In this document: positions 8,032 through 63,910 of the stretch, in pieces
Layout: each line of letters opens with the position of its first letter
How positions within the stretch are numbered: the first letter of the stretch is position 1
Assembly: GCA_000320545.1 (NCBI GenBank)
Contig: ADNK01000490.1
Location: forward strand, 62,001 to 126,000
Source: Bigelowiella natans CCMP2755
Taxonomy: Eukaryota > Protista > Cercozoa
Direction: 5' to 3'
Length of the DNA: 64,000 nucleotides
The notes under the pieces: generated by a model
What the model was told of the DNA's origin: nothing
The model's input: the letters and a program-made list of their open reading frames with translations, nothing else
The model's database searches: none
Translations under genes and position numbers: made by a program

Positions 8032-9074
8032 CTAGTTAACATATCAAAGCGATTATTGATCTCATTTGATCACTTAGCTTCCTATGTGTGCATATCTATG
8101 TATTACAGCGATGCACGGAAACTAAGCGCCTGTTGCCTTGTTTCGCATTGTTGACAGCGACAGCCCGTACGATACGTCGAAATGTCCACCCCACGACACA
8201 GCTCTAAGCGTCGTTTATTTCGACAATGGTCATGCAATGCTTCTGGAAAAAATACGTAGCGTAGCTGCATACATGTACCTACATCTAGATGTAGGCTAGA
8301 TAGGCTCTTCGATGCATGCATGCTAGCATGTTCGTTCGACACATTGTGCATATTATTATGCATCATCACACATTGCATCGTAAATGCTTAATTGATAAAT
8401 TACACCCGTCTTGCATTGTCTCGTACTAGCGTAGGGTGCAATCGCTCAAAATTCACGTATGTCTAGATGTGCATCATGGCAACTTAGCACTGTGCACCTC
8501 CTACTAAACACCCAGCTGGCTAGCTAGCAGCTAGCTAGATGCCTGTCTGTGGCACACATCGATCTAGACGAGTGAGACGGATGCAACGAAGTGATTAAAT
8601 CTAGATGTGCGTCGATGGAATCTGATCTATTTCTGCGACACATTGCAGCTTGTTACATTTCTAGATTTGGGCATTTTAGTTCATTGTATGTGTTAGAGGT
8701 AGTGTAATGTAGCTAGCAAGGAAGCTGTGGGTGCTTGTACTTACGAAGTACGTTGCTGTGGCATTCTCTTTACAGTGAGACCAGACACTTTCAGGTTCCC
8801 CTACTTCCCATTCGGCGAATATACTCTTATTATAGCTTGTACGTACATAAATGTCAAAGTTTTCGAGACTACCAAGGATGTTCCAATATTGCATATTGCT
8901 GTTACATGCATCATGAACAAAGCCGGAAATACGAGCACATGAGACTTAGATTTTAATAATTCGATAAATGAGTTATATACAATGGTTATAACACATACAC
9001 ACAACTATCAATATAGCCTAAGATGAACAATCGCTCTTCGTCTGACTTCCACAGCCCCGCTATACATAGTCCCA

Positions 9075-10418
9075 CTACAGGGCCGTCCCTCTCTCCAAGT
9101 TTTGCCTGATTTCCACCGTGTATGGATCGTAGGCACGCTTGACTTTCTTGTTGAAAACACGGTTCCTCTCATTGATATAGTCTATATCAGCTTCATTGTA
9201 ATGTGCACGACGCCTGCTGAATTTTCTCCTTCGTTCCTGGGTGGCTTCAAGCTCAGCAACCATATGATCGATCATGTGTTCTGGAGGTTTATCGCTTCCC
9301 CACTTGAGTGAACCTTCGCCACGGACTTCATCGCCATTATGCCGGCCCTTTGGAACTTGGGCCAATCGCTTCTTGTATCCCTTGTATAACGCGTCCTGAT
9401 TGAAGACATTCCAGCCAAAAGATGCTTTGTTCTTCTCCTTCTTCTTCCGGACTTTCTCACTCGCTTCGTGCCCAGCTGCTGTATCAGTAAGGAATTTGAA
9501 CTGGTCCGGGTCTAGGCCTGCTGCTTCTAATTCCTTCTTCTTCTTCTCGTATTCCTTCCAACGCTCCAGATTCTTCTTCTTTGCCTTCCCCTTTTCTCCG
9601 CCTGTTAGCCGCTGCTTCTCCTCAACAGCTTGCTTTCTGTTGTCCTTGCGGCCTGCATTCATTTTAAGCCGCAGCGCTTGGAGTTTCTTCTGCCTCTCCG
9701 AAAGAGGTTTACCTCCTCCCCCGACTGAAGAGAATCCTATTTCGTCCTTTTTTTCGGTCTTTGCTGCTTCTTCCTGTTTTTTCTCCTCCTCACCTTCATC
9801 TTCGTCTGAATCGTCGAGTCCCAAGTCAATCTCCTCGTCTATTGGAAGCTTCTTTTTTTTCTTAACTGAGGTTTCCGTATCAGAAGAAACTTCGCCACAT
9901 TCTGCAATTATGACATCTGTGAGTGGGCGGTCGCCGCTCGAAGTTGGTACTTCTTCAATCCTGCGCAACAGTTCCATTCCCTCGGTGAGCCGCCCAAAGA
10001 CTACATGCTTGTCGTTCAGATGGGGGGTGGAGCGGAACGTTATGAAAAATTGTGATCCGTTTGAGTTAGGTCCACAATTAGCCATCGAGAGCATTCCAGC
10101 ACCGAAATGCCTGTGCAGGAAGTTCTCATCATTGAACGTCCCGCCATAGATAGACTCTCCACCCGTTCCGTCAGATCTCGAGAAGTCTCCTCCTTGTGCC
10201 ATAAAGCCCTTTATAACACGATGGAAAATAGTTTGGCGAAACTGGAGTTTTTTCCTGGTGGTTGCCCCGTAGCCCTTTTCTCCCGTGCAGAGACAACGGA
10301 AGTTCTCGGCAGTTTTTGGGCATGAATCTTTGAAGAGCTCGAACACGAGCCGTCCGGCATCCTTAGAACCGATACGAATGTCAAAGTAGACTTTCGGGTT
10401 CGTTGAAGAGGTCGCCAT
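9075..10418 (-). CDS. Cyclophilin-type peptidyl-prolyl isomerase fused to a C-terminal SYF2 splicing-factor domain (single exon)
   Basis: Cyclophilin motifs [31 protein letters not shown] and NGSQFFIT. The C-terminus RRRKFSRRR...[15 protein letters not shown]...[12 protein letters not shown] is the SYF2 signature. Likely start is MATSS at 10418. Confidence 0.93.
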
Positions 10419-11092
10419 TCTCCCCTGGCGCGTGTGTCTGTGCGATAGCAGAAAGAGATGCAAAAATTAATTTTACTGGAGAGGATTTTCGAGAACCTGG
10501 AACAACGCCAACGTGGCTTTCGGAGTTACTTGCGGTCGAGACTCTTCGAAATTGCCGAGATACGCGCAATCTCGAAAGCCTCTTGCAAGCTTACTCTCCT
10601 TTCAAGAGGCAGTGTTAGGCTGAAAATGAAGAAATAGGAGGAGGAGCGCACCAGGCGAGGAAGGTGCCAACTGTGTTTCTGTACAGACCGCGTCAATCGG
10701 AATCCATTCCTGCATATATTGTAGTACGATTATGTCATGCGACATCGGTTCACTACCCTGGTTTGAGATAAATACGATCCGATTCCCATGTGCATTGGGG
10801 AAAAAGAAGCGCGTCTAGTTCTTTCAGGTGCCCATGCGCCACCCGATATTTTAAAAAAAAGGCACTAAAAAATATCGGGGAAAAGTTCTTTTCCTTGTCG
10901 CACAATCGCGTACAGAAAGAAACTCTGCAAATTCCTGCATCACGTTCCCCCCAAAGAGGTTTTGGGGGCTCCAGTTCTCAAACACTGGGGCCGGAATAGG
11001 CTGCGACGAACGGTTATCCTGTGAGTATTTAAGGTAAACTGTAACTGCATGCGAACGTTCGCAAAATCCTAATGCCTTATCTTGTAGGAGCA

Positions 11093-12659: not shown

Positions 12660-13370
12660 CACATTATCCAAATCATGCAATGTGTCAGTTCCTGAGTGGA
12701 CCATCCTAACGTGTAGCACATTTACCTTCGGTCGTATCTCAATGTCTAGATGTGGTGTTGGCATGAATGAGAACGAAAAAAATGGGTCTCTAGTAGCTCA
12801 TCAACAGAACAAAAATCGTTACGCACACAATTCACGGTATGAATATTTCCCGGACAGATGTCTTATCAAGACAGAAGTAGACAAATGATGTGAGGAGCAC
12901 CACTGACGTAGTATGTTGTAGTCTCTATAACACATAGCAATCTAGAGGACCGAGCTATGACATCTAGCATAGATATACGGCAAGCAATTAGATACGCTAT
13001 GTGAGACGGATCTAATGAAACGATTAAATTCTTTCAATGGTCATCCTAGTGTAGCTATGCAGAGCAGCGGCTACAGTGCTATATATGTACGTAATAACTG
13101 CACGATCTAGGCCATACTACGACGACAAGTCAACCACACGCGCAATTCTATACTAGCTATTCTCGCGAGTATGTAATATACGATTCGGCACGTTTGCATG
13201 TGGAAACTCTGCGGGGGACTGCTCATTTTGTGGCTAGATGTCTGCTAGCGCCGCTAGGCACATATTACGGGCTAGCGGGTGACGATGCAAGTTCTGACAA
13301 TGATATAACTTCCAATTGCGAGCATGAAGCGCACAAAGTGAACGGCGAGAGTCTAACAAATACAACATAA

Positions 13371-13516
13371 GCGCTGTGGCCGCCGGCTTTGCACAGCCAC
13401 GTACATCAAGATGACCATTGATGGAATGTTAGATGGACGTAATGAAGTGATCAAATGCATGTGTTCAATGGTCATCCTAATGCCTTGTAGCTGTGCAAAG
13501 CCGGCGGCTAAAGCGC
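13371..13516. repeat. Degenerate ~50-bp inverted repeat, member of a dispersed intergenic repeat family
   Basis: Arms 13371-13420 and 13466-13516 share GCCGCCGGCTTTGCACAGC and GATGACCATTG. Related copies lie at ~13007-13080, 13615-13657, 40182-40260 and 8578-8601. Confidence 0.8.
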
Positions 13517-13746
13517 TCATGTTGAATGCAGCATGCCTCAATTCATGTACATCCGTCTCACATGTTGTACGAACAAGCTAAGGCGGCGATCGAATAACAG
13601 CTGTCGTAGTAAGACGGATGTAATTAATCAATTAAATTTGTTCAATGGTCATCCTTATGATATGTGTAAAATTTGGTCTAAAATCTAGCTAAGGATTAGG
13701 GGCGGTCTAAATTTAACCGGTGCAGAAATATCCATCTATATGTAAT

Positions 13747-13793
<47 letters not shown>

Positions 13794-13808
13794 AGAGCTA
13801 TCGTCGAC

Positions 13809-14210
13809 TTAGAATTTGTAAACCGAGTTTTCCGAAGTACAATAACCAAGGTCTTTGAGAACACCCGTTATTATCTTTTCGCTGCGAGCCCCGCAGAGGG
13901 CTTTGTACATTGGTGGAGGCCCACACACTAAGACCTAAGGACAGCACCCAAGAACGAAAGCTGTTATCATGACGTTTCTTGCGCGTGGCACTTTTCCTAA
14001 GATGATGATGGTGACACTTACCTTCTGGGATTTTGAAGGTGGTGGACACAAGCGTCTGATCTTCTCCGCATCGATAAAGCCTTCCTCCGCGGATCCCTTT
14101 TCCTCGAGCTTAGACACAACGTAGACCGCCCTGAAAGCAGTGTGCAGAATTTGAGTCCATGACTCTAGCTTAGTGAAAACATCAAAAACATTATTGTCCT
14201 TTGTTCGCAT

Positions 14211-14245
<35 letters not shown>

Positions 14246-14822
14246 ATGCTCATTGTGGCCAAAGCTGCAGTATATCACCGAAAATTGGCACATCTTTGCT
14301 GCATCTCATCCAGCTGTTCTTTCAGGAGAATATCCTCCTCGGTATTGTTTCCGTAAAGTAGCACAATTTTAGGGCACTTCATGGTGGAACCGAGTCGATT
14401 GTCTAACAGCTCCATCAGTGCCTAGCGGATGATGCGAATCCCGTACAATAAGTCAAGCTTCTATCCAAGAAGAGGGGATTGAGGAATGATAGAAAGTAGA
14501 GTATATAGCAGCAGATCTTATTTTTGCCAACCTGATACATTGGTGTGATACCCGTGCCTCCCGCGAGCATAATTAGCGAGTTCAACTCTCGAAGTTCCTT
14601 CACAGGTATCTGATGCGGCCACAGTCGATTTTCATTAGCATTGAACACAAAGAAAAAAATATGATGCTATCGTACACAGTGCCTCCCCGTATATCTATTA
14701 CCTTGACATTGAATGGTATGTGTTTGAACGTCACTGCCTTGCCGACGGCGAGAGAACACATCCACTTTGATATCTTCCCCTCAGGGTAGCTCTGAAGAAT
14801 AGAAGTCCAAGACAAAATGGCA

Positions 14823-14885
<63 letters not shown>

Positions 14886-15905: not shown

Positions 15906-16397
15906 GGTAGCGACTAGGCCAAAATTCCGAACTATATGCTACTGTATTCCTAGAGTTTACATTAGGTACATACTTAATGAGCCCATCGATGTTGTTCGCC
16001 ATGAAGTAATCCTGCATGTCCTGCGGAAAGGACAGAAGAGACTTCAGCTCAAGCGACACTCGGGGTAGCGCAATTGAATTTGAGCTGTATTAGGGAGGGA
16101 GGGGGGAACCTGAATGCAAGCTCTTGCCCTCGTATGAAGTAGGCCCCCCCACCCTTCGTCAGTTACGAAATTGGCGATTGATTGGGTATTGATCAGTGTT
16201 GTAGTAGTTGTTGCGAGGAACGACAAACAGCTTTTTCATTTCAGGAAAATCCTGGGAAAGAAATCCAGTCTGGAAATCCTGTGGTTGGTGGCACTGTTAA
16301 TGCAAAACATCCCACATTTTTGTCCTAAAATCAGTGATAACCCATTGGAACATCCGCCCGAGACAACATCACACTGTATCAGTGCCTTTCCAATTTA

Positions 16398-17150
16398 GCT
16401 TCTTCAATCTCAATGCTGATCTTGCTTTCTTTTCTTGCTTTCATTGGCATTGCTTGATTTCATTGTTCAATTTGAGAAGATTTTTTGCATGCTTTTTGCA
16501 GTGGATGTGTTTGTTGTGACACTTCTTGATCACGTGTTTGTTGCAAAAGCAACAATGTGTTTTGTCGTGTTCATTTGCATTGTCGCAGTGACAATCCCTT
16601 GATCGAATGGGCATCAACATGATCTCTGTTGTCCGTTCTGTGTTGAGCTACCCCCACCTACATCAGGAGCAGAAGGGACATTTTTTTGGGTCAAATCCAC
16701 ACGTCCACTGCGGCACAAACAAGCACACATGCGCATTCGACCACACGTGCTTGAAGCGTGCCCGTGATGTGCAGATGCGATGGATCGACTGCATTTGCGC
16801 ACATGGCACACGTCGATCTGGGTGCACATGGACGATTGTCACGTGCTCCACAGTTGTCTAGCTGTGCACAATTGAACAACAATGTCGTGTGACTTCGCAA
16901 CACAAATCTAGAAATGACCAGTCTAGCAGTGACGAATGGACATCACATCCGCGACAGCGCATGCTAGCATGTGCACATCATGCAGGCTGTGCCCAACTAG
17001 CCAACTGTAGCTCAGTCATCCGGCTAGCCGGCCGCACCTGCTGCACAGCCAAGCTAGCAAACACTGCACAAGCGAACAAATGCCAATGCGTGCATGCAGC
17101 ACTTTGATGTAATGACATGCTAGCATGCGCAACATCGGCATTCAACATGT
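16398..17150. other. TpA-depleted / CTAG-enriched intergenic tract
   Basis: No TA in 16398-16648. About 10 TAs up to 17100, all in CTA or TAG context (manual count). Confidence 0.9.
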
Positions 17151-17225
17151 CATTGCTCCCCATCCAAGCTTAGTTTCTACTTTCACCTACATGCCCTTTC
17201 ATTGCTACGTCCTAATCGCATCTTG

Positions 17226-17922: not shown

Positions 17923-17988
<66 letters not shown>

Positions 17989-19810: not shown

Positions 19811-20337
19811 ACTTGCTCGAGGAGTGACCGACCGACCGACCGACCGACCGACCGACAGGAATCGTCCGATGAATTCCATGCATTTTTCACCTAAAAACAA
19901 GTCTTTTTCCAGTCGCAGATAAAGAAATACCACGTCTTTTCGCATGCAGGAAAACATTGATTTTTGATCTGCGACAATATTAGTTTGCATGTCGCAGAAA
20001 AAAATTGCCACACCGATCCTGAGTCACCTCGTCTCCTGCAACCACCCCCACAGACCAACAGCTGCCTCCTGAGGGTGGCAGAGGGAAATGGCATAAACTC
20101 CCGCTCTTGATCCCCCAGGCACACACGGAAAAAGATCACGTCTTTGTCGTCTACAGGTGGAAGCCACGAGAGATTGAAAAACTGAGAGGGGCAGGCTAGC
20201 AGGGAGAGATGGTTCCAGACCAGGATCTCAGTGATGTTCAATAGTCCAAATAGTTCTCCTCTTCTTCGTTTCTACATTTATTCAACTCTTAAACCCTCCT
20301 CGTTCTTCTTTATCTTCTTACCTTTTGATCAGGGAGA

Positions 20338-20486: not shown

Positions 20487-20558
<72 letters not shown>

Positions 20559-23434: not shown

Positions 23435-23997
23435 CACAAATACTACTGCTGTGTTCATCTAGTCATGCATGGATCAGTTTAAAAAAGCGAAGAGCATTGT
23501 CACATTATGCATCTGTGAGCACTACGCAAAGAAGTGTTCAAGATTTTGTTACTCTTAAATGAAATTGGACCCGCCCAAAATTTGAAAAATATGCATGTAA
23601 TGAATGTGTCGCCCCATGCGCCGCAGCATTGACTAGATTGAGCGGGTCGACACACACACACAACACATAAACAGCGCCCCCACACGAATGCATTGTTTAT
23701 TTCATGCAAAGCGCTGTGCTCATATGCTGGCATGCATTCAACTATTTTGTGTCGAAGCACCGCTTAAGCTTGCAAAAGCTCTCATAGCGTCTGCTTTCGA
23801 TAGTAATGCGATGTCGCTATTTGTATGTCGAAAGTCATGATTTTACAAGAGTACGTGGTGAACACTTTTATGTGCATGCCATTGTCGCCGACGCTCAATC
23901 AGCATAGACTATTACGCGTCAATAAATCATCGTAAGCGAGCTAGATGCTGCAAGATCGAGGTCTGTACGTCGATCTACTTGAACTTCAGTGTTTTGT

Positions 23998-32536: not shown

Positions 32537-32572
<36 letters not shown>

Positions 32573-33879: not shown

Positions 33880-35020
33880 CAGCTACCACATTCTAGCATT
33901 GTGCACGTCGCCATGACCATATAGGCACGCGGCATCATGTCGTTTGTAGCCATTCTTTTCTTGTGAATAACTTGCATCTAGTACGGCTCATGTATGCATG
34001 TGAAGTATTATCTACCACATGACATAGCTTGACGGTCAGATGTCATACCTACACCTCTAGAGCTATCATTTCCGCACATTCAAATGCCATTGATGTGCTG
34101 CACGTAGCACATCTACAAATGGGACATCAACCATCTGGACCATGCTAGCATGGACGCATGGACGCGCATTCACATCTCTAGATCTAGGTGTAGCTGCAGC
34201 GGCTAACAAATCTCTTTTTTGTTGCACGCGACACGTGCACCGCATGACGATCGATGCCGCGATTGTTCCATGTTGTTTGCGCGCGCAATTCCAGAATTGC
34301 TGATGTGGCAACATGTGCGTGGATGACCATCTAGCCATGCACGAACTAGATGAAGACGCTTTGGACGAGCACATCTGCTCAGACACGCCACCAGCTAGAC
34401 AGCTGTCCTCTCACGCTTGTCACGGTTGCCATGAGCCAGTCTAGCAGTGACCGGCCCTCTCTGGCCCTTGCTAGCTACGCTCACGCTGCGCACCAGCTAG
34501 CTAGCGGCTAGCCAGCTTGCAAGCTGGCTTGCTAGCTTGTTGTTAATTTCAGGCGAAGTTTTTCATTGGGTCAGCACTTGCGCAGACCATTCTGGCATTG
34601 CACAACGTGTTGATCGATGGAAGTGCAACAACACACAAACAAGCAGATCTGCTGTCCAATCAAAGCTAGCAAAGGTGCATGCATGCACAACGTTGCTGCA
34701 GTCTGGCAATGCCCACTTGGACCAACATTGGATCGTTCGATCCAAGTGAGATGCCACACCCAAAAATGTCTCAGAAGCGCAACTTCACATTGCAAACTTG
34801 TGAACAATGAACAATGACGAAAAACTACATCTCCGAAGTGTGACATGACAATTGCAGTGTGCGAAATGCAGTGCCTCGAACTGGCTTCAGTGAGGACTAA
34901 AACTGTGCCTCGAACTAACTTGTGACAAAGTGAATCACCTCACCATCTCGGCGAGTTGGATTTTGCCTGCGCACGAATGGACAACGACAAGGTCAGTTTC
35001 CAATTTCCATGGATTTCTGG
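33880..35020. other. CTAG-enriched then TpA-depleted intergenic tract
   Basis: Dense GCTAGC/TCTAGA up to ~34540. 34560-35020 has 4 TAs, all CTA (manual count). Confidence 0.9.
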
Positions 35021-35118
35021 TCAATAATTTGAAGAGATAATATCTAAGGATGTGCTAGAAAGAAACAGAATTTGTTTTTTTGACAAAGAAACGCCCATTT
35101 TCAGTGAGTCCCCTCAGC

Positions 35119-36409: not shown

Positions 36410-37357
36410 CATATATTCATTATTTGTAACATTTGCATTCGCAAATATCTTCGAATTAGGCGAGGTAGTGGAAGGATTATATGACGTGTATAAAGAAATG
36501 AGAGCTGAGAAACGGTGATCATCTCTATTGGTTGGGATTCCATCTTAAAGTTGCATGCATTGTTTATCGGGAAAACAGCGATAAGTGTCGAAACATTCAA
36601 GTACGTTAACAGGCGGAAGAGTTGCAGCAGCTAGAGACATGCCCCCACTTCAACATTGTATAAATATAAATATGAATATTATGTGTATGTATGTGTGCGC
36701 TATATTAGTCTGTACTTTTTTTAATGAATGTTGCAATGCTATGTGCTGCACGAGACGGCATGCTTGCTACTAAGCTGAAAGCATAGCATAGCTAGTCAGA
36801 GCGCGCGATGCAAATATGAGCTGCAGCAGAGGTCCATCCGTTTTATAGCAAGCATTCTTATTTTGAGCTATTTACTTTAGTATATAAATGCATATATAGC
36901 TGGAGCCGTCGCAGCTATGAGCTCGGGCGTTGACGTAAATTACTATTCTTATCGCATGCAGCATGGTACATATGCGTGAATCGCAGCTGCTGACAAGGCG
37001 TGCGTAGATTACGTTCGTTTGACAGTATTCTACATAATAAAGACATTTGTAGATGTAAAGTTTTGTTGGCAAAGACTGTTATCTGTTATCCTTTCTACAA
37101 TGACTAGTAGAATCATTTAGCCTGTGTTTAGATTCTGAACGCTGCATCGCGAATTGCGAATAAAACCATCAGCATCTACATGGCTATGCTGCACTTCGCA
37201 TGGAACTTATAGTGAATGAGCTCTTACCAAAACAATGGCCCTACTGCTAGGATATTAAGTTGTAGTTAGGTTTTTGCTTACAGCTCGTCTCTGTATTCCA
37301 CAGCCTGGTAATTCGCAAAAGCATTTATTTAGAAAGTGCGTGTTTATTTCTTAGAAG

Positions 37358-39834: not shown

Positions 39835-40959
39835 TTAGCGCTGCTAACATCCATCCCGGCATAAGATTTATTAATGAACGTAATCTTAGTACATATATCT
39901 GCCTTGCTCGAGGTTTGCAAACTCAGACGTCTTATCACTTGCGGGAGCTTTCATAACATTCTGTGCAAAAACTTTGAAATCGATCCGATCGAGCAGATGC
40001 TACATCGTGTCGCCGCGAAAACTCAAATTATGTGATAGATGTATACGATGGCTGCTTTGCAGCCATGCTAGCATGGCTCGTGCTGGTGCGTTCTTGCCTA
40101 GCTTGCACTGTTTTGACCGAATTGTCATCCTAAGCGTTAATGAAAGCGTGTGTGTGTGCACATGCTAGCATGTGAAATGCAGATGTAACAAATGTACAAA
40201 TTGCATGGAATCAACAGTCATCCCAATGTCTAGATGTAGCTGTGCAAAGCGGCGGCTGCAGAAGTCGGTGGCCATTAGTGCTCAGCTGACATGTTCCATG
40301 CTAGCATGTTTTGCCGAATGTAATGCCATTGTTGTTGTTGTTTCGCCCGGCGCGTGACACACATACATGTATGCATGCGATGCATGCTAGCATGCTAGCA
40401 TGCTATGGTCATGGCGCTTACTAGCTTAGCTAGCTAGTTACGATAAGTGGTCGAAATCTTAAACGTCGTCGCGCACATGGATGGATGCCTTTATTCTAAC
40501 GGATGTTTGATGTGCATTCGATGATCCAGTATGCGTACATACAGTGAGCGAGTGACATAGCAGGTCGGAGCGTAGGGGCAATACATCTAAATGTCTGAAG
40601 CTAAGCAAGTAGCGAGCGTAACATATCTAGACATGGTGCAGTTTGGAAAATCTAGGTTTCGAGGGCGAAACAGAATGATGATATGTACGTTCTGATTGCG
40701 ATACTACCGAGAAAACAGTATAAACAATTAGGATACATCATACTATTTGATGTCTTACTGTACGCACTTCAGATTCTAAAAGCATTAAGTCCAATACCTG
40801 GCGATTCTAATAGTTTCACTGTTCAAGCGTTTTAGTGGCAGCGTCTTAACTTCTCCATCCCACTAAATTAGTTAGCAATTTGTCGTTGATGATTGTTTTT
40901 TACTTCACGAATCATAAACGACGGCGTGTCGAAAATAAATTTCGAGGAGAAAATTGGGG

Positions 40960-42021
40960 TTAAACCTTATATTTGTGAAGGTTTTCAGTCGTCCAGTAGC
41001 CAGAAACCTTACTATTTGGAACGGAAGAACCTTTTTAAAGTTTTAGGTTAACTAACATCGTGCTGTAACTCATCTATCCAGAACTTATCAAGTTACCCAT
41101 TCCCACGGAACATGTTGGATTCTCACATGAGCCTGGGTTGAAGCAAAATGGACACACATGTTCCTCCATGCATCCTGGTTAAGCAATAAAACCATCTTTA
41201 TTTACAAAAAGTTTCGAATTGCTAATTCCCCCCTCTATGAGCAGCTGAGAGCAACAGGTCTTACTACCACATTTCATCATTCCTCCTGCACAGCCCTCGC
41301 ATAAACTCCCGAGACAGTCGGGGCAGAAATTCCATAACATGATGGAGGAATCCACGAATACTAAGACATATATCATTGAATGGGTAATCACAGGCAGATA
41401 TAGAAATATTGGTGTGTGCTTCTACATCTTGTTGGGGGTATCTCGTCCTGGCCTCGCTCCTGCAATTCCTCATTTGTGCAGTCGAAGCACAAGCTACTTT
41501 CGCATCTATAGCACACAACTTTCATCATGGAATTGTCAGTCAGGTGATGGGCTCTACATTCCATAGCCTACCGAGTATGGCATGCAATGCAGTCGACAGA
41601 GATGAACTCCTAATGCACACATAGGAACGAATGAGTTCGGGCAGATCAGGCGACACAACTTCGAGCAAATTCACCTCATACTCATCCACACGACTGCATT
41701 TATCACAAACGCCACCGGCTACGTAATCCAAGATCAGAGTCACTAAGCCTGAACATATCGTCATCGTTGGCGAGCAGGTACGTGAAGGAACAATGTACAA
41801 TGTGGAGCACCTTGATGAGCCACGTTATGACCTAGCGCATCTTGAATCGTCAACACAAGTTTTTTATGCACTACAGGTTCGAGGCTCATGATGACGATGA
41901 GCAAGTTTGGACCTATTCCTTCCCCTCTTCCACTTGTCACGACTCGCACGTACGTACTTCGGTTGCTTGCAGGAGAAGAACCTGTGCTCTCTTTGGACAA
42001 AACACAGTTGAATTTTGACAT
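40960..42021 (-). CDS. Small cysteine-rich (multiple CxxC) putative zinc-binding protein with short introns
   Basis: In-phase exons give LVTLILDYVAGGVCDKC, CIACHTRCESSLCFDC, FCPDCLGSLCEGC and KCGCMEEHVCPFCFNPGSCENPTC. The 5' exon is uncertain. Confidence 0.55.
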
Positions 42022-42053
42022 GCGACACGACCTCAGCTGCTGCAATTTTTATA

Positions 42054-43260
42054 GAATTTTTGCCTGTGTGACGTGATGGGTGAGCACACTCATGATCCTT
42101 CAAGATCCCCTCATTGGAATCACTTCATTCATTCATTCTTTCATTCAACCTGAATCGTTCGGCTGGCGGATGCGAAATTTGGTTGGTTGGCTTGTTCATT
42201 GCAAAGGAGGTGGAGCACGTTGAGCACCGAAAGAAAAAGAAGAAGAAAGAAAGAAAGAAACTTTGTAGTTCAACTGCGTTTCCAAAGTTTTGCATGAAAA
42301 AGAGTGAAACATTGAAACATCGAAACCTTGAAACGTTGATTGCAATGCGACACTCAACACGATGCACAGACAGCACGCTGCACTCCAGCACTCCCAGCGC
42401 GATGAAAGCACCTCGAACAATGGGTGAACGAGTGAATTGTGAACGAACGACTTCACGCGTGTTTCCAGTGATCAATCGCACGCCACTGGCACCAACATTG
42501 ATCGTCGCATCGCATCGTGCGTCACGGCTGCGCGCCGTCCACCATGCGCGTCTTGTCATTGTGCTTTGCTTGCATGGCTGGTTGGCATCGATTGCATCAA
42601 TGTGGTCCTGCGCCAGCTAGATCGACTCTGTCGACTCGTGGCCACGACTGCAGACACGATGTGCACAGTGCACACATCGCATGTGATCATTGTGTACATG
42701 CAGTGTGGCACACATCTACTAGTCTAGTAGCTAGCTACGTGCAGTGCAACTGTGCAACACACATTGCTAATTGCCATATTGCGCACGTGAGATCGACCGA
42801 TGTGATGTGATCAATGCAAGCTTTGCAATTTGATCAATGGTCATAGATGGTCATGTCATCTTGATTGACTGATGACGTACAGTTGAACAGTGCACAATGT
42901 GCACCTTGTCGATCCATTGTCACGCAGCATGCTAGCATGTATCGCATCATTGTGAGATGTGCAACCAGCTTGATAATCTTGGCTAGTGGAGCTGCAGCCA
43001 CGTGCTCGCTCACGCAGGTGAACTAGCTTGCAATGTATGTGCTCCCAGCGAATTGACGTATGAACACGAAGCATGAGCGAGGTGTATAACAGTGCATGCA
43101 TGATGGGTCAACACTGCGGGTCGTGGCATAGCAGGGGACTTGCATTGTACTGCACTGGCCGTTGTACATTCACAGGTAATGTTACGTGTCGCGCGTGTGG
43201 CATGTGCAAAGTCATGGCATTCATGCATGATCTTCGTTTGTTAAGCTAAGGATGAACTAA
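42054..43260. other. TpA-depleted then CTAG-enriched intergenic tract
   Basis: One TA (GTAG) in 42054-42617 with abundant CG, followed by CTAG/GCATGC-rich sequence. Confidence 0.92.
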
Positions 43261-43593
43261 CATAAAGAAATCATCTAGTAGCACAATAAGCATTAGGATA
43301 CATTGTGTGAGATATTAATCAATTGCAACTCGGCGTAGATCGTTGAGAGGTTTTTACTACAAAAAAACCGTCACGCCATATCTGCCGGCTATCGGTCATA
43401 AGCTAAGTGCACCAATCGACAACACTTAATTATTGAGCGAAGGGAAGTGAAAGATTGTTTCTGCTTCTTACTGGTGATAATCTATGACGATTTTCACTTG
43501 TGGTGAAATATCGAATGTCACAAAAGATTGAGATTTTGCAACGTAAATTAAGATTAAATAAAAAGCTGCAGCAAATAGAGCTAGCTTGGTGGA

Positions 43594-44211
43594 CTACCGT
43601 CTCTCGAAGTCGTACTCTCTTGATTTCTTATTTTGACTATAGTTATGCGGCGACGTTGATTCTAAATGACTCCACGACTCACTCTCGTTTTCTATGCTGG
43701 ATCGAGACTTTCGTCGTATCAAAAACTTATAGAATTTTGGTATTGGTAATTCAGATGACGCCCCCTCATCTTGAGGGGCTTCGTTTCTCTCACTTTCCGC
43801 TATGTTGACATTGAGAGTTTCTTCTCGTGATGGTACGGAACCCTTAGGAGATGATACTTTTCGATAGTGTTGATATTCCCTCAGTGTCTGGGACTTTTTC
43901 TGTAGTTGTCGCTGGAGCTTATGAATTTCAGTTGCGAGCTTGTTCTCCCGCAATACTTGCCGTCTAAAAAAATAGGGAAATGTGTTGTTTTAGCTAATCT
44001 GTTTTAACAGCTGTCTATACAAAAAACATTTGTTTTCCAAGATGAACACGTTAAAATTAATGTGATACCGAACATGGGCTTCTAATTTTAGTTTTTTGTC
44101 TGAGTCTCTATCCGCCGGAAGAGTTGGCCGTTGCCATATGGTGAGGGCACAGCACGTCACGATAAGACCCACCACGAATAGAATTGCTGCGACAACACGA
44201 GAATTGAGCAT
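43594..44211 (-). CDS. Small signal-anchored coiled-coil protein of unknown function
   Basis: MLNSRVVAAILFVVGLIVTCCALTIW (transmembrane-like), one intron, then RENKLATEIHKLQRQLQKK. Confidence 0.5.
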
Positions 44212-45358
44212 CGCTATCAAGAATCTATGACATTGGTTGGATAAGCTCGTACCAGTCAGCAGGTGCATGGCCATGCCTTGATGTCGAAGCCAGCTCACTA
44301 TCCCAAAGGAGGATAGAGTACCTAGGATTCGGCACCGACTGACTGCCCCTCTTTCTCAAACAATGCCTCGTTCTCTCTTTCGGTGCTGCTCCTAAGTACT
44401 CCTAAACAGCTCACGGGGGGGAATCCATGGAGGACGACATAGACTCTACGATTGGCGGCGTTATTAGCAGTTACAACTCGTAGTTTACAATGTCAGTGAC
44501 GGACAACAATAAATAACAGACCATTTCTTGCATTAATTTACTGTTTTTTAGTACCTGTGGATCCACGTGATTGTTGTCAGTGCAAATAGATCTAGATCTA
44601 GTTAAAAATACATCGTAGTTTCCCCCCTGAAATCTTTTAAAAATCACTCTTCAGAAATCATATCTAATGGATGATATCCGGATTACCAGAAATATTTCTT
44701 CACAAAAAATAAGGTATTTTCCGGAAGAACATCTGGCCAAATAATACATGTACATTTAGTCTACGCTCATACCTGGACTACGAGCTCATTAAAATTTGAA
44801 CCTTCTCGGCAATAACCTGGGTTTGGGTTCCGAACTTGTGGGATAAAATGAAGCGAACAGCGAACTGCCAACTGGTCCCAATTTTTCCCATGTTTCTACA
44901 ACAAGGTCTGCAGATCTACGAGCTTAGAGAAGATGAATTGTAACTACTTATTCCGTCCATTCAAAAAAGTTGCATCCTCGCTTATTGCATAGAAATAAGA
45001 TGAAAATTTTATGTGCGACAAAGGAATAGAGCTTAATTTGTTAGGAAACCCAGAGAAACCACAGACGAACAGTCAAACGGAATGGCGTCGATCACGTAGG
45101 AGGTTGGCCTAGAGTCGGTTTACATCGATGTTGGGGATGGTTTTTTGAGTGTGGGAATCTAATAGTTAAGATAGAATTTCTGCTCTCCTATTCATACGCC
45201 ATGAAGAAGGGGAGGATTGGATATCTTTTGTTGCAGCCGTAGTGGAGTCACGTGCTCATTCATAGTTTTCCAATTACTTATTTGGACCACAGACGCGTCT
45301 TGGGCTGACGCGTTGATTCCTGGCATAGAGATAACTGGCTTACGGAAGGAAGATTTCA

Positions 45359-51345: not shown

Positions 51346-51972
51346 CTTGATGCGCCACGAACTCGCCTGTCTCTGTTTACATAACAATGTATAAACCTGC
51401 AACCAAGTTCTCAATGAATTTGTTATAGTTCGCACATATGATATGCTTTACGTATGCTAGCATGGTGGTAAACCCAACTTACTCAAAGTCTTTAGCAATA
51501 TGATACACGCATACTAGCATAATGCTATGTCATTCTCGCAGGGAAATCTGCCTGGTTGCTTTGTTATGTTGGTTGAATTCCATTCGCTTGCATGGGCGAT
51601 GGTTGCGCAAAACGTACCGCTAGGCGTATAGCAACAGAATCTATTGCAATATCTAATTATAATGTGGATCGGATGTGCAACGCATGACCTAACTAAGCGA
51701 GGCGTTGCTTGCCAGCCCCTAGCCAGCCACCATGCACGTAGCACAGCAACTTAAACTTAGTTTGGATCGTCCCGCGCGTGAATGACACGATGCGCGCATT
51801 TACACATACATGTGATGCATATCCATAACTAGATAATGCAATCAGTCGCATTATTGATTAAATACTGCTCCGCATTGATTAAATCTACGCAATGCCACGC
51901 ACACGCGTGTTTAGTCCACGTCGCTGTCGTCAGATTTTAAAAATTATCGTGAATGCTAACGCAGCCCAAATT

Positions 51973-57079
<5,107 letters not shown>

Positions 57080-57359
57080 TTAAAGTGAAAAGCATTCTCA
57101 TTGTGGGTGTTCGTTGCTTCCAAATCCTGAGTCAAAATCTCGAACTACCATGCTCACCACTTCCCCATTCTACCATCCCATCACTAGCTAAACTCGGTCC
57201 ATATACCCATCAAGGTAGAGGGTGTGCGGACAACAGTGCTTTGTTATCAGCGTGGCAGGCAGATCTGTCGTTGGTCGCTATGCTGTTCCCGATTCTTCTT
57301 TTCTTCTCGATTTTTTACCTGTGACAAACGTAAATTGTTGTCGTTTCATTGCCTTAAAG

Positions 57360-58650
57360 AATCGAAACAATTCCAGATTTTCGTTCTGCGACACTGGATT
57401 GATTCCTCCTTCTCTCACCTCCTCGTTGCCGACGTGTGTTTGACGGAATCACTTCTTGCTGCGTCCTCGCAGCCATGCGCGTCAATTTTGCCCATGCTGG
57501 TTTTCACACCAGAGAGTCCTCATTGTTTTCAGCTCGAGGCACTACATTTCGCACTTTGCTAGTGTCATGCAATGGTTGGAAATGTGGTCGATCAACAAAG
57601 TTTCTTTCTTTCACGATCGACAGAGCTTCCACATCGACCTTTTGTCAAGTCCCCACGTCCGGTCTACGTTGAGTGCATGGCTGCTCCGCTTTCCCAGCTG
57701 CTTGAGGCGCGACCACTTTGTCAGAAGTGCGTTTGTGCACGTCTTGTTGGAGTGTCGAAGTGAACACGAATTGACGACCTTGAACCTTTCAGCCTTGGAT
57801 CTTGACTTTGACACTTTGGCACGTTGCACCGCGCTGGGCCATTTGGAATCACTTCACTCATTCATTGATTTACCTGTTCATGGTTGCCGCTTCTTCTCCT
57901 TCTTCTTCTTCTTCTTCTTCTTCTTCTTCTTCTGCTTCTTCATCATCTTCTTGATTGCAAAGCGCAAGGTGGAACTTGGTGCACTACTTTTTGTGGTTCT
58001 GTGAACGCAACAAACTGCAACATTCGAACCACTTGATTCGCGCACTCATCAATGGGATTCATCAGTCTCCAATCATTTGTTGTGTGAGTGATCGAATGGG
58101 TGATTTCCAACAGGATGCAGCACACACACATGCACAGTGCAGGCGAGCAGCAGGGGAATCATCAAACCCCAACGGGCTAGCGGGTGTGAGATGTGAGACC
58201 AAGTTGCCTGGGAGGGGACCGTTCACGTCTGAGTCGCCACAGCAACATCTAGAACATAACCATGCACAGGCAGGAAACAAACTTGCGGCACTCCATCTCT
58301 CTTGTCAATGCTTTTGAACATGCACGCACGATCTGGATCATGCTAGCATGCATGGCTGGCTCGGATGAGTCGTATTTTGATCGAATGAGCATCGCAAGAT
58401 GCGAGCCCGTGCTAGTTTCAGTAGATCACAACATGCGATGTAGCTAGGAAAAACTATGCCTAGATGTAAACATCACTTTGGATTGATGAGACTAACTTTC
58501 TTCTGTAACCATGCAAAAAATACATGAAAAACATCAATGACAATGGTTTATGCCGCGTGTCTAGTTCGACTCTTGCTGCAGCATGCTACCCCATGAAGTG
58601 GATGCTCGAATGCGAGTTGCTCGAAACCTAGTTTGTCCATGAAATTGGTC
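57360..58650. other. TpA-depleted then CTAG-enriched intergenic tract
   Basis: About 8 TAs in 57360-58340, 6 of them CTA/CTAG (manual count). Confidence 0.9.
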
Positions 58651-58700
58651 TTTGGTGTCAGTGTCATAGATGATTAACTATTAGCACAAGTAGCGAGCTG

Positions 58701-59641
58701 CTATTCGAAGACTGCAGCGTATACCGGTCCCTGGACATACTTCGTTGGATCTCCAGAGCGATTCTGAATCAGTCCATACATTTGGCCATCAAATCCTCTG
58801 AAGTTTACCTGCAATCTCCGGTCGGGCCGCATTAGTACCGATGCAGCGCTTGTTGGAAAGGGGGCGTGATTGCTGAAATATTGCTTGTCACAGTCCGGGT
58901 CGGCGACGCAGCTGATGCACCACGGGCAGTCCTCTGGCGAGACTGCCGGACACATGCACGTACCCTCGCGCGCCTTGGAGAAGGAGAGAGGATCTTTCGG
59001 GTCTTGCTGATAGATTTGCCATAAGTCAATAAATTCCGACATTCGTGCGAATACTTCGATCTGCCCATTCGCATTCACGGCTGCCGCAGGGTCAGTGTCA
59101 AATGTTAGGGAAGCATTGGGAGTAAGACAATGCCATTTGCTGAACGGTACCGAGTCCGTTATCTGCACAGTTGAAGTGGAACGAATGAGATCGATGACAG
59201 CATCAATATCATGATTTTTATTGTAATTGTAAAATTTTAATCGTGTAATTTATACACATATACATGTGTGCATACGGCATTATACACGTACACCGCGATG
59301 TTCCGCACGAAAAATACAAGTGAAGTTTTGAATTTGCGCAGTTGTTACAAAAATATTCTGGAAGGAAACAAATAATATAAACTCAGTCGCTTATACTCGA
59401 AAACCACGAAGTAAGGAAGTTAGCTCACCTTTGAAGCGTTGCCTATCTGAAACTTGTGGAAGAGAGATTGGTTCTTTCCGAGCGCGAAAACGTGCAGGCC
59501 GTAATGCGGGTTAAATACTTGAGCCCATACTTGGTTCTCGATGTGAGATGGATCGAGAACAGAGTTGTTGTAAGCACTTTTATTTGCCCTCCCGACAGCG
59601 GCGAGGAAAGCGAAGAGGGTAGGCACTAGTCGCAGCGGCAT
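58701..59641 (-). CDS. Secreted protein with lectin-like beta-propeller blades (PLL/fucose-lectin-like repeats)
   Basis: Signal peptide MPLRLVPTLFAFLAAVGRA and intron 59163-59428. Three repeats: GLHVFALGKNQSLFHKFQ, GQIEVFARMSEFIDLWQIYQ and RRLQVNFRGFDGQMYGLIQ. Confidence 0.65.
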
Positions 59642-59685
59642 TGAACGGATGGATATTTTGGGAGATTATCCGAAGATCTCGATAA

Positions 59686-60194
59686 TAGGGTGTGATCCAC
59701 GGATTGATTTTGGATGGATATCGTCGATTTCCGACCCCATAAAAATTCGGTAAGTACTTTTAAAATTTCGCGCGGTCGAATTTCGTGAGCAAGAACTTGC
59801 CTTACTCAGGAATTCCGTACGGGTTTGCTCGACGATTTCCGTCCATGAGGAAAAAGACATGAGTTTCAGATATGCGACAACTACATTGACATTCTTTTTT
59901 TTTTTAATAAAAATGATTAGATCTCGTCTGTATGACACGATACTAACGATATCGTACATATAAAATCGAGTATTGGGTTCTCATCTTTCGTAGGATGGCG
60001 AACAGGGTCGTAATGGATGAATTTAAAATGTGTTGTCGCACTGTGCAAAATCAATGCGAAATGACTGTGTTTAGTTTTCAACAATTTCCGTCCGTGGAAG
60101 ACCATTATAAGCTCACGAAGGTGCACCGGAAATCATCGAAATCCATCCTGGACGGATTTCGTCGATGGATTTCCAAACGGTGGATCACACCCTA
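59686..60194. mobile_element. MITE-like non-autonomous element (~510 bp)
   Basis: Perfect 15-bp inverted ends TAGGGTGTGATCCAC...GTGGATCACACCCTA, inverted subterminal GGATGGATWTCG..GATTTCCG motifs, no credible ORF. Target-site duplication ambiguous. Confidence 0.6.
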
Positions 60195-60512
60195 AATTGT
60201 CGAGGGGCCGTAGGATAGGGGAAAAAAAAATTCGGAGAATTGTTTTCGGCCATGCAGTGTGACAGGCCTTGTCGCGAAAATCGTTTTCTACTGTAGCCCA
60301 GTGCGACGAGATGTCACTTTTTTGGCCATCCACATTCCTATCTACAGGCTGTACCGAGGAACAGTCCATGCAGTTCACATAAGGAGATGATGGTAATTTC
60401 CGAGAGTGTCCGATAGTGTCCGATAGTGTCCGAAGTTTGTTTGTGTCTCGTTTTATTAAAGATTCGAATTCCAATCCAATTGGATGCGACATGGCAAATT
60501 TGTAATTGATTA

Positions 60513-60870
60513 CCCCCGTTTTCAGGTTTGGCATATTCGTCAGATTTTTATGCCGGCATAATTTCTGCCGAACTCCGTTCATTTTCAGGTTGTGATTTTG
60601 ATTACGAAAAGAAAAAAAATCACGGAATATTTTAATGATAGCAATAAAAATTCATGACTATTCGAGCCAGATCGATGAATCCCGGTAGGCTCCCGGGCAG
60701 AGTCCGATTTTCACCTTTCTGGCATGGGAAAACACACCCAACTTCTGACGGCATAATCCCGGGGATTATGCCGGTAAATAACGGGAATGCCGGAAGCCCC
60801 GATGGCATTTTAGGTGATATCATTTTTCGGCATAAAATCTGACGATCTTTTGCAAACCTGAAAAAGGGGG
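60513..60870. mobile_element. MITE-like element (~358 bp) with ~44-bp imperfect TIRs flanked by TA
   Basis: Left TA-CCCCCGTTTTCAGGTTTGGCATATTCGTCAGATTTTTATGCCG and right CGGCATAAAATCTGACGATCTTTTGCAAACCTGAAAAAGGGGG-TA. Internal near-palindrome CGGCATAATCCCGGGGATTATGCCG at ~60749-60773. Confidence 0.72.
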
Positions 60871-61632
60871 TAACGTGAATTCTCGCGTTCAAGGTGTTCT
60901 GATCTGTGAAATCTCTGATGAGTACAATTGATCTGTGATGAGAATCACGTGCAGCAACTACGTCCGAACTCTGCTATTTCATGTCGTAAGCGTGAAATAT
61001 TCCATATCGTATCTATGAAACATATCCCATTTGCAAAATAGCGAGGAGGGTAGTTCCACGCCAGCCTCTTGCACACGTTGCGAAACCCAATGGATGGTTC
61101 ACCAGTACGAAACGATTCATCCCCACCCAACCAAATCTCTCAGTATCTTCATCCTTGGTCGATAGGAAGGATGCAAAGAAGAAGAAAACTACCCCAATCT
61201 GCTTGCAGTGTGTCGGATATCTGTCCGCCTGACAACACAAAACACAAGAAGAGTAAGATTTTATTTTGATGCATGTATCTTTGTGATGTATCATGTTGTG
61301 ATGGGGGGAAAATGAAATACTTCAACTCCATGAAGGCTTCACATGAACGCTAACATAAAGATATTGAACATGCCAGGATATCTTGTATCCACGGAGACTG
61401 GTACACCCTCTGTATCTCTGAAAGTCAATTTAACGTCCAATGAACTAGCTTCGTGCGATAGTCCTCACAGTAGGCTAAGAAAAAGGAGGAGGATGTACGA
61501 AAAATCTGCAACAAATCTTGATTGGCTAATCTGTAATATCTCTCCCCTTAAATGCCCTCAGAAACGCCACCATAAAACACGAGCGTGTTGATATAGGAAC
61601 TTCTCAGAGGCAGAGACAGAAGATACACGCAG

Positions 61633-62904
61633 ATGAGAGGGGGTAAATTCACAATGGTAGCACTCAATCAAAACTTTTTCACCGATTTATGTAACCTTTT
61701 ACGCAGAAACGAAGAGCAGAAAAGGGAAATGCTTGCGCAATTTAGTGAGATGAGCTCGCATTACAATAGAAGGCATCACTCAACCTATGTCCGCCAGGAT
61801 TCTGTTTTTCCATTGCAACTTTCTGCGCCATATCTTGCTCCTCGAATGCGAATGCCTATAGTTTATCCACTGCGTCACATACCCTATTTTGGTATGCATA
61901 CACTTGGAGAAGTACACGTTGATCATCCAGCTCTCCCCCCTCAAAATTTTTATTTCATTTCCCCACATCAACAATCATACGTTTCGATACCACCAGTTCT
62001 CCTTAAAACTCACCCAAATCCTGCGACTTGGTCGCAAGAAAGAAGCCTACCCCAAGATTTTCAGATTAAGCATGCTCCAAATCATTACTGCTCCTCAAGC
62101 AGTCACGAAATTTATCCGCCACCCCATATCCCCCACTCTATCCATGCTCGTGTCGCCCACACCCCAGCCACGGCCCCACCCACCTCTTACCTTCCCACCT
62201 CTTCAGTATCAAGGCAATATTCGGAAGGAAGAGAGAAACAGGCCTCAATGGCAAATTCTGGCAGTAGTAATGGCGGCCATAGCCAATATTCTCATCTGTC
62301 GTTACCAGATGGCGAAGGGAATGTTGTCGGTCCGAAAAATTTCGCTGTGAAGACTATTCCCCCTGTTACTATGCCTTCGCAAACAGTCAAGAATTTACCG
62401 AACGTACTGCTTGGAATGTGTGACAGATTCACCGAAAAAAAGGGGGGTTACGCCGACGTAGCGGAGGATTCACAGGGTGGACTTTTCATCGTAAATCATC
62501 ATTCGAAGGAAGTGCAATCAATCCGTCCACAAGCAGAAGAAACTCCATCATCTTCCGGTCGTAGTGCAAACAGCTTTGGAGTGCCTGATCAAATTCGAAC
62601 AGTTCAAATTTTCAATAAGCATTCCGGTAAAATGCACAATGAACCTTCCTAATAATCTGGCATCCATTGTTACTGACAAGCGATCACTCGCATATGTTCT
62701 GTGAAAGGTCGTTACAACTTGCGGTATGTTTGTTCGGTATGTGGATCTATGAAAGCTGGCAAATGTCACATTCTGTCGCATCTGCGATCTCACACAGGAG
62801 AGCAACCATTCAAATGCACGATTTGCAGTCGAAGGTTTGCGCACAAATCGAATTGTGTTAGGCACCTCTTGCATATGCATGGTGTGAAAATCCCATCATG
62901 TTAG
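61633..62904 (+). CDS. C2H2 zinc-finger transcription factor (two C-terminal fingers)
   Basis: Exon 61633-62626, 54-bp intron (GTAAAA...TACTGACAAG), exon 62681-62904 encoding YVCSVC...HLRSH-TGEQPF-KCTIC...HLLHMH. Confidence 0.85.
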
Positions 62905-63099
62905 ACAAGTAGCAGAGCTTGTCTGGACTAAATGAAATTGATAGACTTGACAAAGAAGTGTGAAAATTCATTTTAGAAAATCTCTGGTTTACAAAATAAT
63001 GATAGAATTTAGACATGACGATGAAAACTTAAACATTGTTTCTTTTCTTGATCCTTCGTCGCACCTAAACACCAAGGTCTTAAAACCTTAACTTACACC

Positions 63100-63910
63100 A
63101 ACTTTGAACATGTGGAAAGAAGCTAAATGTGCTTGCCATCATTTCTTCATGAAAACTATCGTGTGGTCTACAACGATGCAATTGCACATCGTGTGGTGCG
63201 ATCAAAGATTGAAAAATCATGTGGAATCTTTGCAGTGAAAAAATGCAGAAAAATAGATGATGCTGCTATGCCACTTTGACTGACATGATGTTTGAGTTCG
63301 ATGATCATGGCTAGATGGGCATCTCAATGTGCGGGCTTAGGAACAACTATCTAACTAGACAACCGTCTGTGCGTTGTCTCTGCTAGTCCTGCTAGCCTGT
63401 GCGTTCTAGCGTTGCCCACATTTAACAGCGCCGCGCTAGCTAGCGCGCATGGCATGCATGTGCAACTAGCTAGGTTGTAGTAGGGCCAAAAACTAAACTA
63501 AGTTTTGCTCACAACCATCTCCATGCGCCATCTGCTGTAGCTAGTAGCTAACTAGCTAATGCATGTCCACTGCTAAATCCATGCTGCACGTCTAGCTGTC
63601 TAGCTGTGTTAGCCATGCTATGCTAGCATGCTAGCATGTCCGTGGCAACTAGTCTAGCTAGCTAGTAGTGTTCAGCTAGCTAGTTCCACATCTAAGCATG
63701 CACACAACAAAGCTAGAAAGTGACGCAAATTGACAACATGCGTGCTTCTGCAGGTCGGCATTAGTAGCTTTGTACGAGAACGCCATGCACAGCACGTGCA
63801 GCAGTGTTTCTTAATCTAGTAATCTTAGCAAGTACCATGTAAATTGCAACATGAATCACGGACACAATCATGTCTTGTCTATACCTAGATCTTTTCTAGA
63901 TTCAACGCAA
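63100..63910. other. TpA-restricted / CTAG-rich tract downstream of the zinc-finger gene
   Basis: Residual TAs in 63100-63340 are CTA or TAG. Runs such as GCTAGCTAGC and CTAGTCTAGCTAGCTAG follow. Confidence 0.85.

Follow-up and report, generated by a model that had tools for sequence, protein, structure and literature searches.

CTAG insertion scars and TpA-poor, repeat-bearing spacers beside the genes of Bigelowiella natans: a probable trace of two mutational processes

The stretch analysed here (the window, 64,000 nucleotides) comprises bases 62001–126000 of a 142,428-bp contig, ADNK01000490.1, in the 91.4-Mb assembly of Bigelowiella natans. It holds genes with many short introns (the ten verified by RNA are 62–190 nt long, mostly about 65 nt), and between the genes lie tracts in which the tetranucleotide CTAG is abundant or the dinucleotide TA is nearly missing. 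Eleven such tracts, summing to 8,851 bp or 13.8% of the window, were listed in an initial annotation, which placed them at gene 3′ ends and suggested that they could be the mutational footprint of a mark, on the DNA or in the chromatin, of termination or insulator zones. Our analysis, which used a composition profile of the window in 500-bp steps, separates two signatures: a putative insertion scar around CTAG, found behind gene ends, and a loss of TpA in repeat-bearing DNA before the next gene of a head-to-tail pair. On balance, this pattern is probably the product of two independent mutational processes operating over two kinds of spacer DNA, with the hypermutation being drawn by repeats and spreading from them.

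RNA evidence (transcript contigs from three runs, and reads) spans positions 39700–45699, where four genes can be ordered. The transcript of a SIR2 gene on the plus strand ends at 39958–40135. Gene X (40473..42035, minus strand) is defined by transcript contigs from the three runs, seven CT..AC introns and 3′-biased minus-strand reads, its 3′ end lying at 40473–40595. Gene Y (43241..44450, minus strand) has two CT..AC introns and minus-strand reads, with transcript ends at 43241–43351 and a 5′ end at about 44450, while gene Z starts at about 45049 on the plus strand and has a GT..AG intron at 45100–45291. These ends make 40000–40620 a convergent spacer, 42035–43241 a head-to-tail spacer and 44450–45049 a divergent one; no RNA coverage was found at 42100–43100. 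The RNA-verified convergent tract (40000..40620) contains 10 CTAG, 7 of the scars described below and TA at an observed/expected ratio (o/e) of 0.97; the divergent spacer 44450..45049 is without a tract (TA o/e 0.80, CA and TG about 1.0). By RNA mapping, the scars are thus situated between the poly(A) ends at 40.0–40.5 kb and behind gene Y at 42.6–43.2 kb. One RNA run examined as raw reads (X21) consists mostly of first mates in mRNA sense, heaped near 3′ ends, and resembles a 3′-tag library; reads of this type could map poly(A) sites genome-wide.

We define a scar as a CTAG with the same 4-mer on each side (N4-CTAG-N4). In the window, identical 4-mer flanks accompany 44 of the 208 CTAG (21%), 6 of 343 CATG and 4 of 434 TGCA; other palindromic tetramers stand at about 1–2%, no non-microsatellite tetramer exceeds about 5%, and only microsatellite cores equal CTAG. 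Genome-wide, CATG-CTAG-CATG occurs at 3,828 sites, as against 7 for the reversed control. The excess of like flanks and this count together point to a staggered cut at which 8 bp are inserted, CTAG being the invariant core of the resulting site. Judged from its sequence, the scar is an insertion made up of CTAG and a 4-bp target duplication, and C-W-W-G targets, CATG especially, are favoured: of 56 duplicated targets, 37 begin with C, 48 end in G or T, and 14 are CATG.

A constant remnant within a fixed-length target duplication, far over chance, is the hallmark of a transposon footprint, and the CTAG scar may be the leftover of a cut-and-paste element or of a staggered-cut enzyme, either of which it resembles. 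In being clustered and numerous it is also like the footprints of cut-and-paste transposons (e.g. Tc1/mariner, whose remnants are TA-flanked), whereas its preference for a palindromic C-W-W-G target sets it apart from known ones. Literature searches found no description of a footprint of the N4-CTAG-N4 form.

The scars do not exhaust what is peculiar to the 3′ tracts, where the GpC o/e reaches 1.4–2.2 and palindromic words are in excess, both beyond the effect of the scars. The palindromic hexamer fraction is 0.038–0.046 in three of the four CTAG-bearing halves of head-to-tail spacers and 0.015 in the fourth (58100–58650), as compared with 0.009–0.026 in the TA-free halves and 0.019 window-wide. 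Since the GpC, CATG and palindrome excesses go beyond the scars, the terminator-side DNA is a distinct class in itself. That the CATG richness comes from scars duplicating their own target was considered and rejected, because CATG remains high even with the scars removed.

The position of the tracts relative to genes is supported. The eleven tracts account for 40 of the 44 window scars and for 108 CTAG out of 208 (binomial p 3e-30). For 17 strand-anchored genes of the whole 142-kb contig, six of them outside the window, we counted the scars within 1 kb of either flank: the 3′ side has 39 and the 5′ side has 2, which both fall in the spacer between genes X and Y. Our tally by spacer gives the same picture, with scars at 10 of 11 3′-side spacers and 1 of 15 5′-side spacers (Fisher p 2e-5). 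This bears out the placement at gene 3′ ends proposed initially, and we suppose that selection keeps the insertions away from promoters. Nine of the eleven tracts are real by their CTAG and scar counts and TA o/e, and two are weak: 23450..23950 is scarcely over background (3 CTAG, 1 scar, TA o/e 0.69) and has flanking genes of ambiguous strand, and 36700..37250, a convergent spacer with 3 CTAG, 0 scars and a TA o/e of 1.13, is not a tract of this kind.

Two further statements on orientation, that tracts between convergent genes retain more TA and that divergent spacers lack tracts, fared differently. The first holds, since outside CTAG the TA o/e is 0.51–0.95 in the five scar-bearing convergent tracts and 0.08–0.31 in the four head-to-tail ones. 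The second is right insofar as the five divergent spacers of the window contain a single scar between them, and it carries three caveats: the spacer 19810–20330, which holds that scar, is TA-poor (o/e 0.44); the spacer 59641–61633 resembles mostly a minus-strand gene body; and L018, a locus on another contig, may be a divergent spacer that does have a TA-poor tract. At 59500–60500 the CpG o/e rises up to 1.2–1.66, and minus-strand open reading frames (ORFs) and exon chains suggest a gene body where a divergent spacer had been annotated.

The second signature is found in four tracts, which contain 10–15 TA against 30–57 expected (Poisson p 2e-4 to 4e-11), with a TA o/e of 0.18–0.30 and CA and TG o/e of 1.3–1.9. 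They lie at 16176..16975 (14 TA against 45 expected; CA o/e 1.89, TG 1.65), at 34501..35050 (12 against 30), at 41876..42725, over and upstream of the start of gene X (10 against 42; CA o/e 1.51, TG 1.61), and at 57226..58400 (15 against 57). The CA and TG counts of the four tracts are 85/89, 58/54, 81/84 and 106/105, the last being those of 57226..58400, and with such equal gains nothing links the decay to one transcribed strand. For this reason, strand-biased transcription-coupled deamination was rejected.

Mettrop et al. (bioRxiv 10.64898/2026.01.13.699255) found in B. natans mutation-accumulation lines a spectrum of A-to-G and T-to-C changes at TpA only, and tied the hypermutation to two viral inserts and to 124 large clusters, which are depleted of TpA and enriched for domains of transposon type. 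These authors used cut-offs of Rho TpA <=0.43 and CpA+TpG >=1.52, a cluster being three 1-kb windows, and they liken the process to fungal repeat-induced point mutation (RIP), proposing a RIP-like defence. All four of our TA-poor tracts carry the same footprint, that is, TpA depletion with CpA and TpG gain on both strands alike. Unlike the clusters of the preprint, they measure 0.55–1.2 kb, below the three-window definition, and unlike its targets they are situated in spacers of the host genome, immediately before host genes, and contain non-coding short repeats instead of genes of viruses or transposons; here, the hypermutation is read from base composition and sequence comparison. Screening every ORF of the TA-free tracts for protein domains gave none of viral or transposon type.

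The head-to-tail spacers show a polarity, in that CTAG faces the 3′ end of the upstream gene and the TA-free part faces the next gene. This part of the initial annotation is confirmed by RNA at one spacer and supported by gene evidence on at least one flank at the other three. In the four oriented spacers CTAG is confined to the first half, whereas hardly any TA outside CTAG remains from about the second to the ninth tenth. The TA-poor zone thus takes up most of the spacer, the CTAG half lies mostly within it, and the two parts overlap. Intact CTAG is kept only on the 3′-end side of these spacers.

Orientation is strongest at 42.0–43.3 kb, where RNA on both sides confirms the polarity and the CTAG-scar half (42600..43240; scars 42719 and 42932; palindromic hexamer fraction 0.046) adjoins the 3′ end of gene Y. 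It is good at 57 kb, where the gene downstream of the spacer has its first coding exon in the minus ORF 56543..57079, encoding a Pyr_redox_2 N-terminus (E 1.4e-10), and a 182-aa minus ORF stands upstream; the CTAG-bearing half (58100..58650; scars 58177 and 58343) adjoins the stop of this minus ORF, 58704–59249, and the exon-chain score is 39 for minus against 14.5. At 16 kb the orientation is moderate, being given by weak collinear matches to FNR-type domains on the minus strand, and the CTAG-scar half is 16700..17150 (scars 16908, 16923, 16964, 16997, 17024 and 17120; palindromic hexamer fraction 0.045). It is likewise moderate at 34 kb, where the plus ORF 32226–32615 has a match to protein P0001 (E 3.4e-4) that carries on in the plus ORF after it, and the CTAG-scar half facing the 3′ end of the plus gene is 33880..34540 (scars 33893, 34145, 34178, 34331, 34441 and 34532). 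On other contigs, a PP2C gene (L014, E 3e-64) and an HSP20 gene (L019, E 2e-14) start just past a TA-free zone that has the CTAG zone on its opposite side. By our tally, all eight neighbours of known strand fit the polarity (p 0.004).

Strands outside the RNA-covered stretch were anchored by Pfam matches, long ORFs and one homologue. A Pfam scan of about 60 exon-size ORFs gave few matches, and an exact-protein look-up for existing gene calls returned no record. Exon-chain scoring was usable on limited regions only: it was correct for 7 of 7 known genes and ambiguous in many regions, and when run on the whole contig it fused everything into one gene per strand. Splice signals are weak in these genes. 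A trinucleotide strand score was dropped because a purine-rich PPR gene dominated it.

The two signatures meet in decayed scars. Genome-wide, CATG-CCAG-CATG and CATG-CTGG-CATG, the products expected of TpA transitions in CTAG, number 1,013 sites together, as against 127 for the neighbouring C-to-T and G-to-A changes and fewer than 10 at random. Of the contig's five decayed scars whose flanks are perfect, three are in or at the edge of TA-poor tracts, which cover 2.4% of the contig; these three lie at 34592, at 42385 and at 34291, the last a little to the left of the 34501–35050 tract. Seven loci outside the contig yielded seven more, in or beside TA-free zones. Since decayed scars occur within TA-free zones, we infer that scars formerly reached nearer the promoter and were erased there. 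The idea that CTAG is immune to hypermutation was rejected on the same counts and on the decayed scars of the contig.

An explanation through transcription-coupled exposure should be weighed at this point. It supposes negative supercoiling or R-loops at promoters, which would open the DNA to an adenine deaminase, and positive supercoiling with topoisomerase-type 4-bp staggered breaks at 3′ ends. The constant direction of the polarity, with the TA-free part always toward the promoter and the scar part always toward the 3′ end, speaks for it, as does the fit of a 4-bp stagger to a 4-bp duplication. Trapped topoisomerase II gives rise to short duplications in yeast. However, divergent promoters, where the strongest negative supercoiling would be expected, are not TA-free; CA and TG gains are equal, so that no strand was preferentially exposed; and fill-in of a staggered break leaves the constant CTAG unexplained. 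We regard this scenario as distinctly improbable.

A feature that sets the TA-free halves apart is repetition. Genome searches revealed dispersed short repeats in four of four TA-free tracts, while three of three control spacers, namely two CTAG tracts and a divergent spacer, have no or almost no match elsewhere: 8050–8700 is unique in the genome except for one 49-bp match, 63100–63910 has one short match elsewhere, and 44450–45049 is unique. In the 57-kb tract lie module A (57475–57612, plus strand; at least 44 scored copies among 112 candidates, 70–89% identity), module B (57843–57866) and a (CTT)n run. The 34-kb tract has an abundant repeat at 34799–34921, on the minus strand relative to module A, with at least 62 scored copies among 481 candidates and up to 96% identity. 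The 42-kb tract combines modules B (42075–42146), C (42196–42232), a partial A (42229–42297) and F (42302–42390), three of its modules each being found at 6–10 loci elsewhere, and the 16-kb tract holds module E (16382–16571; 6 other copies, 75–84% identity). Within the 142-kb contig the modules are confined to TA-free tracts, and the non-homologous flanks of the modules are TA-free as well. Module A loci on other contigs, which were picked for a repeat in common with the 57-kb tract, are TA-free across 0.5–1 kb and have CTAG on one side.

Module A has a conserved part, about 130 bp long, and behind it a (CTTT)n or (CTT)n run. Besides the copy in the window, compared copies lie at L013:1501-1614, L014:1501-1622, L015:1501-1617 and L019:1515-1677; at some loci elsewhere the module forms tandem pairs, or inverted pairs with the tail ends facing each other about 100 bp apart. 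A TA-rich tandem array (L013:2531-3114, TA o/e about 2.2) adjoins both a CTAG zone and a TA-free zone. The possible divergent spacer mentioned above (L018:746-1826) has a module B copy and one perfect scar; on its left is a glycosyltransferase exon on the minus strand and on its right a putative plus ORF with an RRM-like motif, for which a homologue search gave no match. Upstream of the window, at contig positions 47026–47525 (L007:7026-7525), there is an isolated 500-bp TA-poor tract (CA o/e 1.74, TG 1.71) with no scars nearby, which contains a 48-bp inverted repeat and has one matching locus elsewhere.

Module A stands 90–410 bp upstream of four different genes, and in five of the six composites its CT-rich tail runs towards the CTAG zone or leads away from the gene downstream. 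This arrangement could be read as selection for function, the TA-free modules being a shared promoter cassette and the palindromic words bidirectional termination or poly(A) signals, which would serve both strands of a convergent spacer. Such a reading seems to us very unlikely, as perfect 4-bp duplications about a constant CTAG are the signature of insertion and not of a selected motif, the scars decay through the known TpA process, and the flanks that share no homology with the modules have lost TA too.

A related possibility is that the short repeats, module A and its relatives, are mobile promoter or boundary cassettes, set between head-to-tail genes, mostly in one orientation, at hundreds of places and rewritten, along with their surroundings, by the TpA defence; we put this forward as a speculation that is unlikely to hold. 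Miniature inverted-repeat or short interspersed elements, such as mPing in rice, settle in the 5′ flanks of genes. Our modules are like them in being short, non-coding, multi-copy repeats that precede unrelated genes by no more than a few hundred bases, and unlike them in lacking terminal inverted repeats, target duplications and tRNA-like parts and in occurring in mixed order and as partial copies. In the TA-free tracts, none of these three features was found, and Rfam and tRNA scans gave nothing credible.

Taking these data together, we suggest the following course of events. Palindrome-rich untranscribed DNA behind poly(A) sites would gather 8-bp CTAG insertions. In head-to-tail pairs, the DNA before the next gene would bear short interspersed repeats, in modules of 70–190 bp with a few to hundreds of copies, and this DNA, with a few hundred bases on either side, would have undergone TpA-to-CpA/TpG hypermutation, the repeats possibly attracting it in a RIP-like manner. 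The hypermutation may then spread into the scar zone and convert CTAG to CCAG or CTGG. As intact CTAG would survive only away from the repeats, polarity would result. To the initial observations, the present analysis adds the RNA-verified polarity, the repeats in TA-free halves with their controls, the genome-wide decay count and two loci elsewhere.

The view of the tracts as mutational footprints on the terminator side therefore stands, given the scar signature, the TpA decay and the 39 to 2 placement. Its interpretation as a single mark of termination or insulator zones, be it a DNA modification or a chromatin state, underlying both CTAG richness and TA loss, does not find support, and we consider it improbable. 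In its favour, both signatures keep to untranscribed spacer DNA past the ends of genes and are rare in divergent promoters; the GpC and palindromic-word excess of the 3′ tracts is greater than scars would produce; and the large hypermutable viral region of B. natans is transcriptionally silent (bioRxiv 10.64898/2026.01.13.699255). However, the two signatures are unrelated, TA is kept in convergent spacers, and the TA-free zone reaches and overlaps the active transcription start of gene X. The TA-free halves are a different class of DNA, repeat-bearing (4 of 4) and non-palindromic, and L018 may present a TA-poor tract in a divergent setting. A mark comparable to base J, which labels RNA polymerase II termination regions in kinetoplastids, would be expected at all termination zones, while here scar-bearing convergent spacers show no TA loss and 36700–37250 has neither signature. 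The likeness to base J is one of position only, at transcription-unit ends including convergent junctions; base J is a modified thymine detected chemically, our data are DNA sequence, and the TA-free part lies at promoters, not terminators.

The hypermutation proposed for these tracts resembles RIP in its dinucleotide-specific transitions, concentrated on repeats and apparently reaching into adjoining unique sequence. It differs in chemistry, with A-to-G at TpA here and C-to-T at CpA in RIP, and in sparing a young tandem repeat on the same contig. RIP requires repeats much longer than those found here, and we know of no link between the B. natans hypermutation and a sexual cycle.

Several points weigh against our reading of two processes. 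No source element was identified that has CT...AG ends and duplicates 4 bp, and no candidate filled site was examined; perfect scars account for only about 40% of the tract CTAG, and the high CATG and GpC content of the tracts is not accounted for by scars. On the side of the repeats, the TA-free tracts yielded no transposase, reverse transcriptase or terminal inverted repeats. Among five copies of module A there are 17 transitions and 14 transversions, and CA-versus-TG sites are clear in just two places, so that the TA poverty of the module appears to be largely inherited and not acquired in place. The spared repeat, of about 92 bp in tandem with 95% identity (contig 2274–2557, or −59726 to −59443 on the window scale), has a TA o/e of about 1.8; being young, TA-rich and unmutated, it indicates that repetition alone is not the trigger. 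The link to repeats is drawn from four tracts, one isolated tract and three controls, the reading does not account for the restriction of repeats to the promoter side of head-to-tail spacers, and the strands of several flanking genes are assigned on weak evidence.

The remaining tracts are CTAG-scar tracts in convergent or probably convergent spacers. The first, 8050..8700 (12 CTAG, 4 scars, TA o/e 1.02), separates a plus-strand PPR-type gene from a minus-strand cyclophilin-SYF2 gene. The former is an intron-free ORF with many PPR repeats, which covers window positions 134–5134 on the plus strand and extends upstream beyond the window to 2,234 aa on the contig; a weak WW-domain match follows downstream at 6508–6876 on the same strand. 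The latter (ORF 9075–10463, minus strand, 462 aa, with Pfam matches to both domains) unites two domains in one ORF, a peptidyl-prolyl isomerase of the cyclophilin type and that of the splicing factor SYF2. The probably convergent tract 12700..13700 (12 CTAG, 2 scars) is flanked by a plus ORF with its stop at 12659 and by weak collinear FAD_binding_6 and NAD_binding_1 matches on minus ORFs at 13938–14998; within it, positions 13360–13527 form an imperfect 170-bp palindrome with 74% complementarity. At 51450..51950 (5 CTAG, 2 scars), also probably convergent, the exon-chain score of the left flank is 68 for plus against 20 for minus, and on the right minus is slightly ahead next to the tract (22.8 against 18.4) and clearly so farther along the same putative gene (39 against 15.5). 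The densest tract, 63100..63910 (25 CTAG, 9 scars), lies between a plus ORF with its stop at 62652 and a minus ORF at 64739–65389 on the window scale, past the window end.

If the four sub-kilobase TA-poor tracts of this 64-kb window are typical, there would be thousands of them genome-wide before ordinary host genes, which would change the view of how far TpA hypermutation spreads and what it targets, and their association with short repeats offers a concrete hypothesis for the choice of target. The 8-bp CTAG insertion is seemingly undescribed and probably exists at some 10,000 sites or more, and its decay by hypermutation provides a built-in relative clock for both processes. In a genome that is difficult for ab initio gene prediction, the layout of the two signatures also serves to show where genes end and which way the next one runs. 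Should the repeats indeed prove to be mobile cassettes, many host promoters of B. natans would consist of hypermutated mobile DNA, and the defence would operate at thousands of host loci rather than at a handful of viral inserts.

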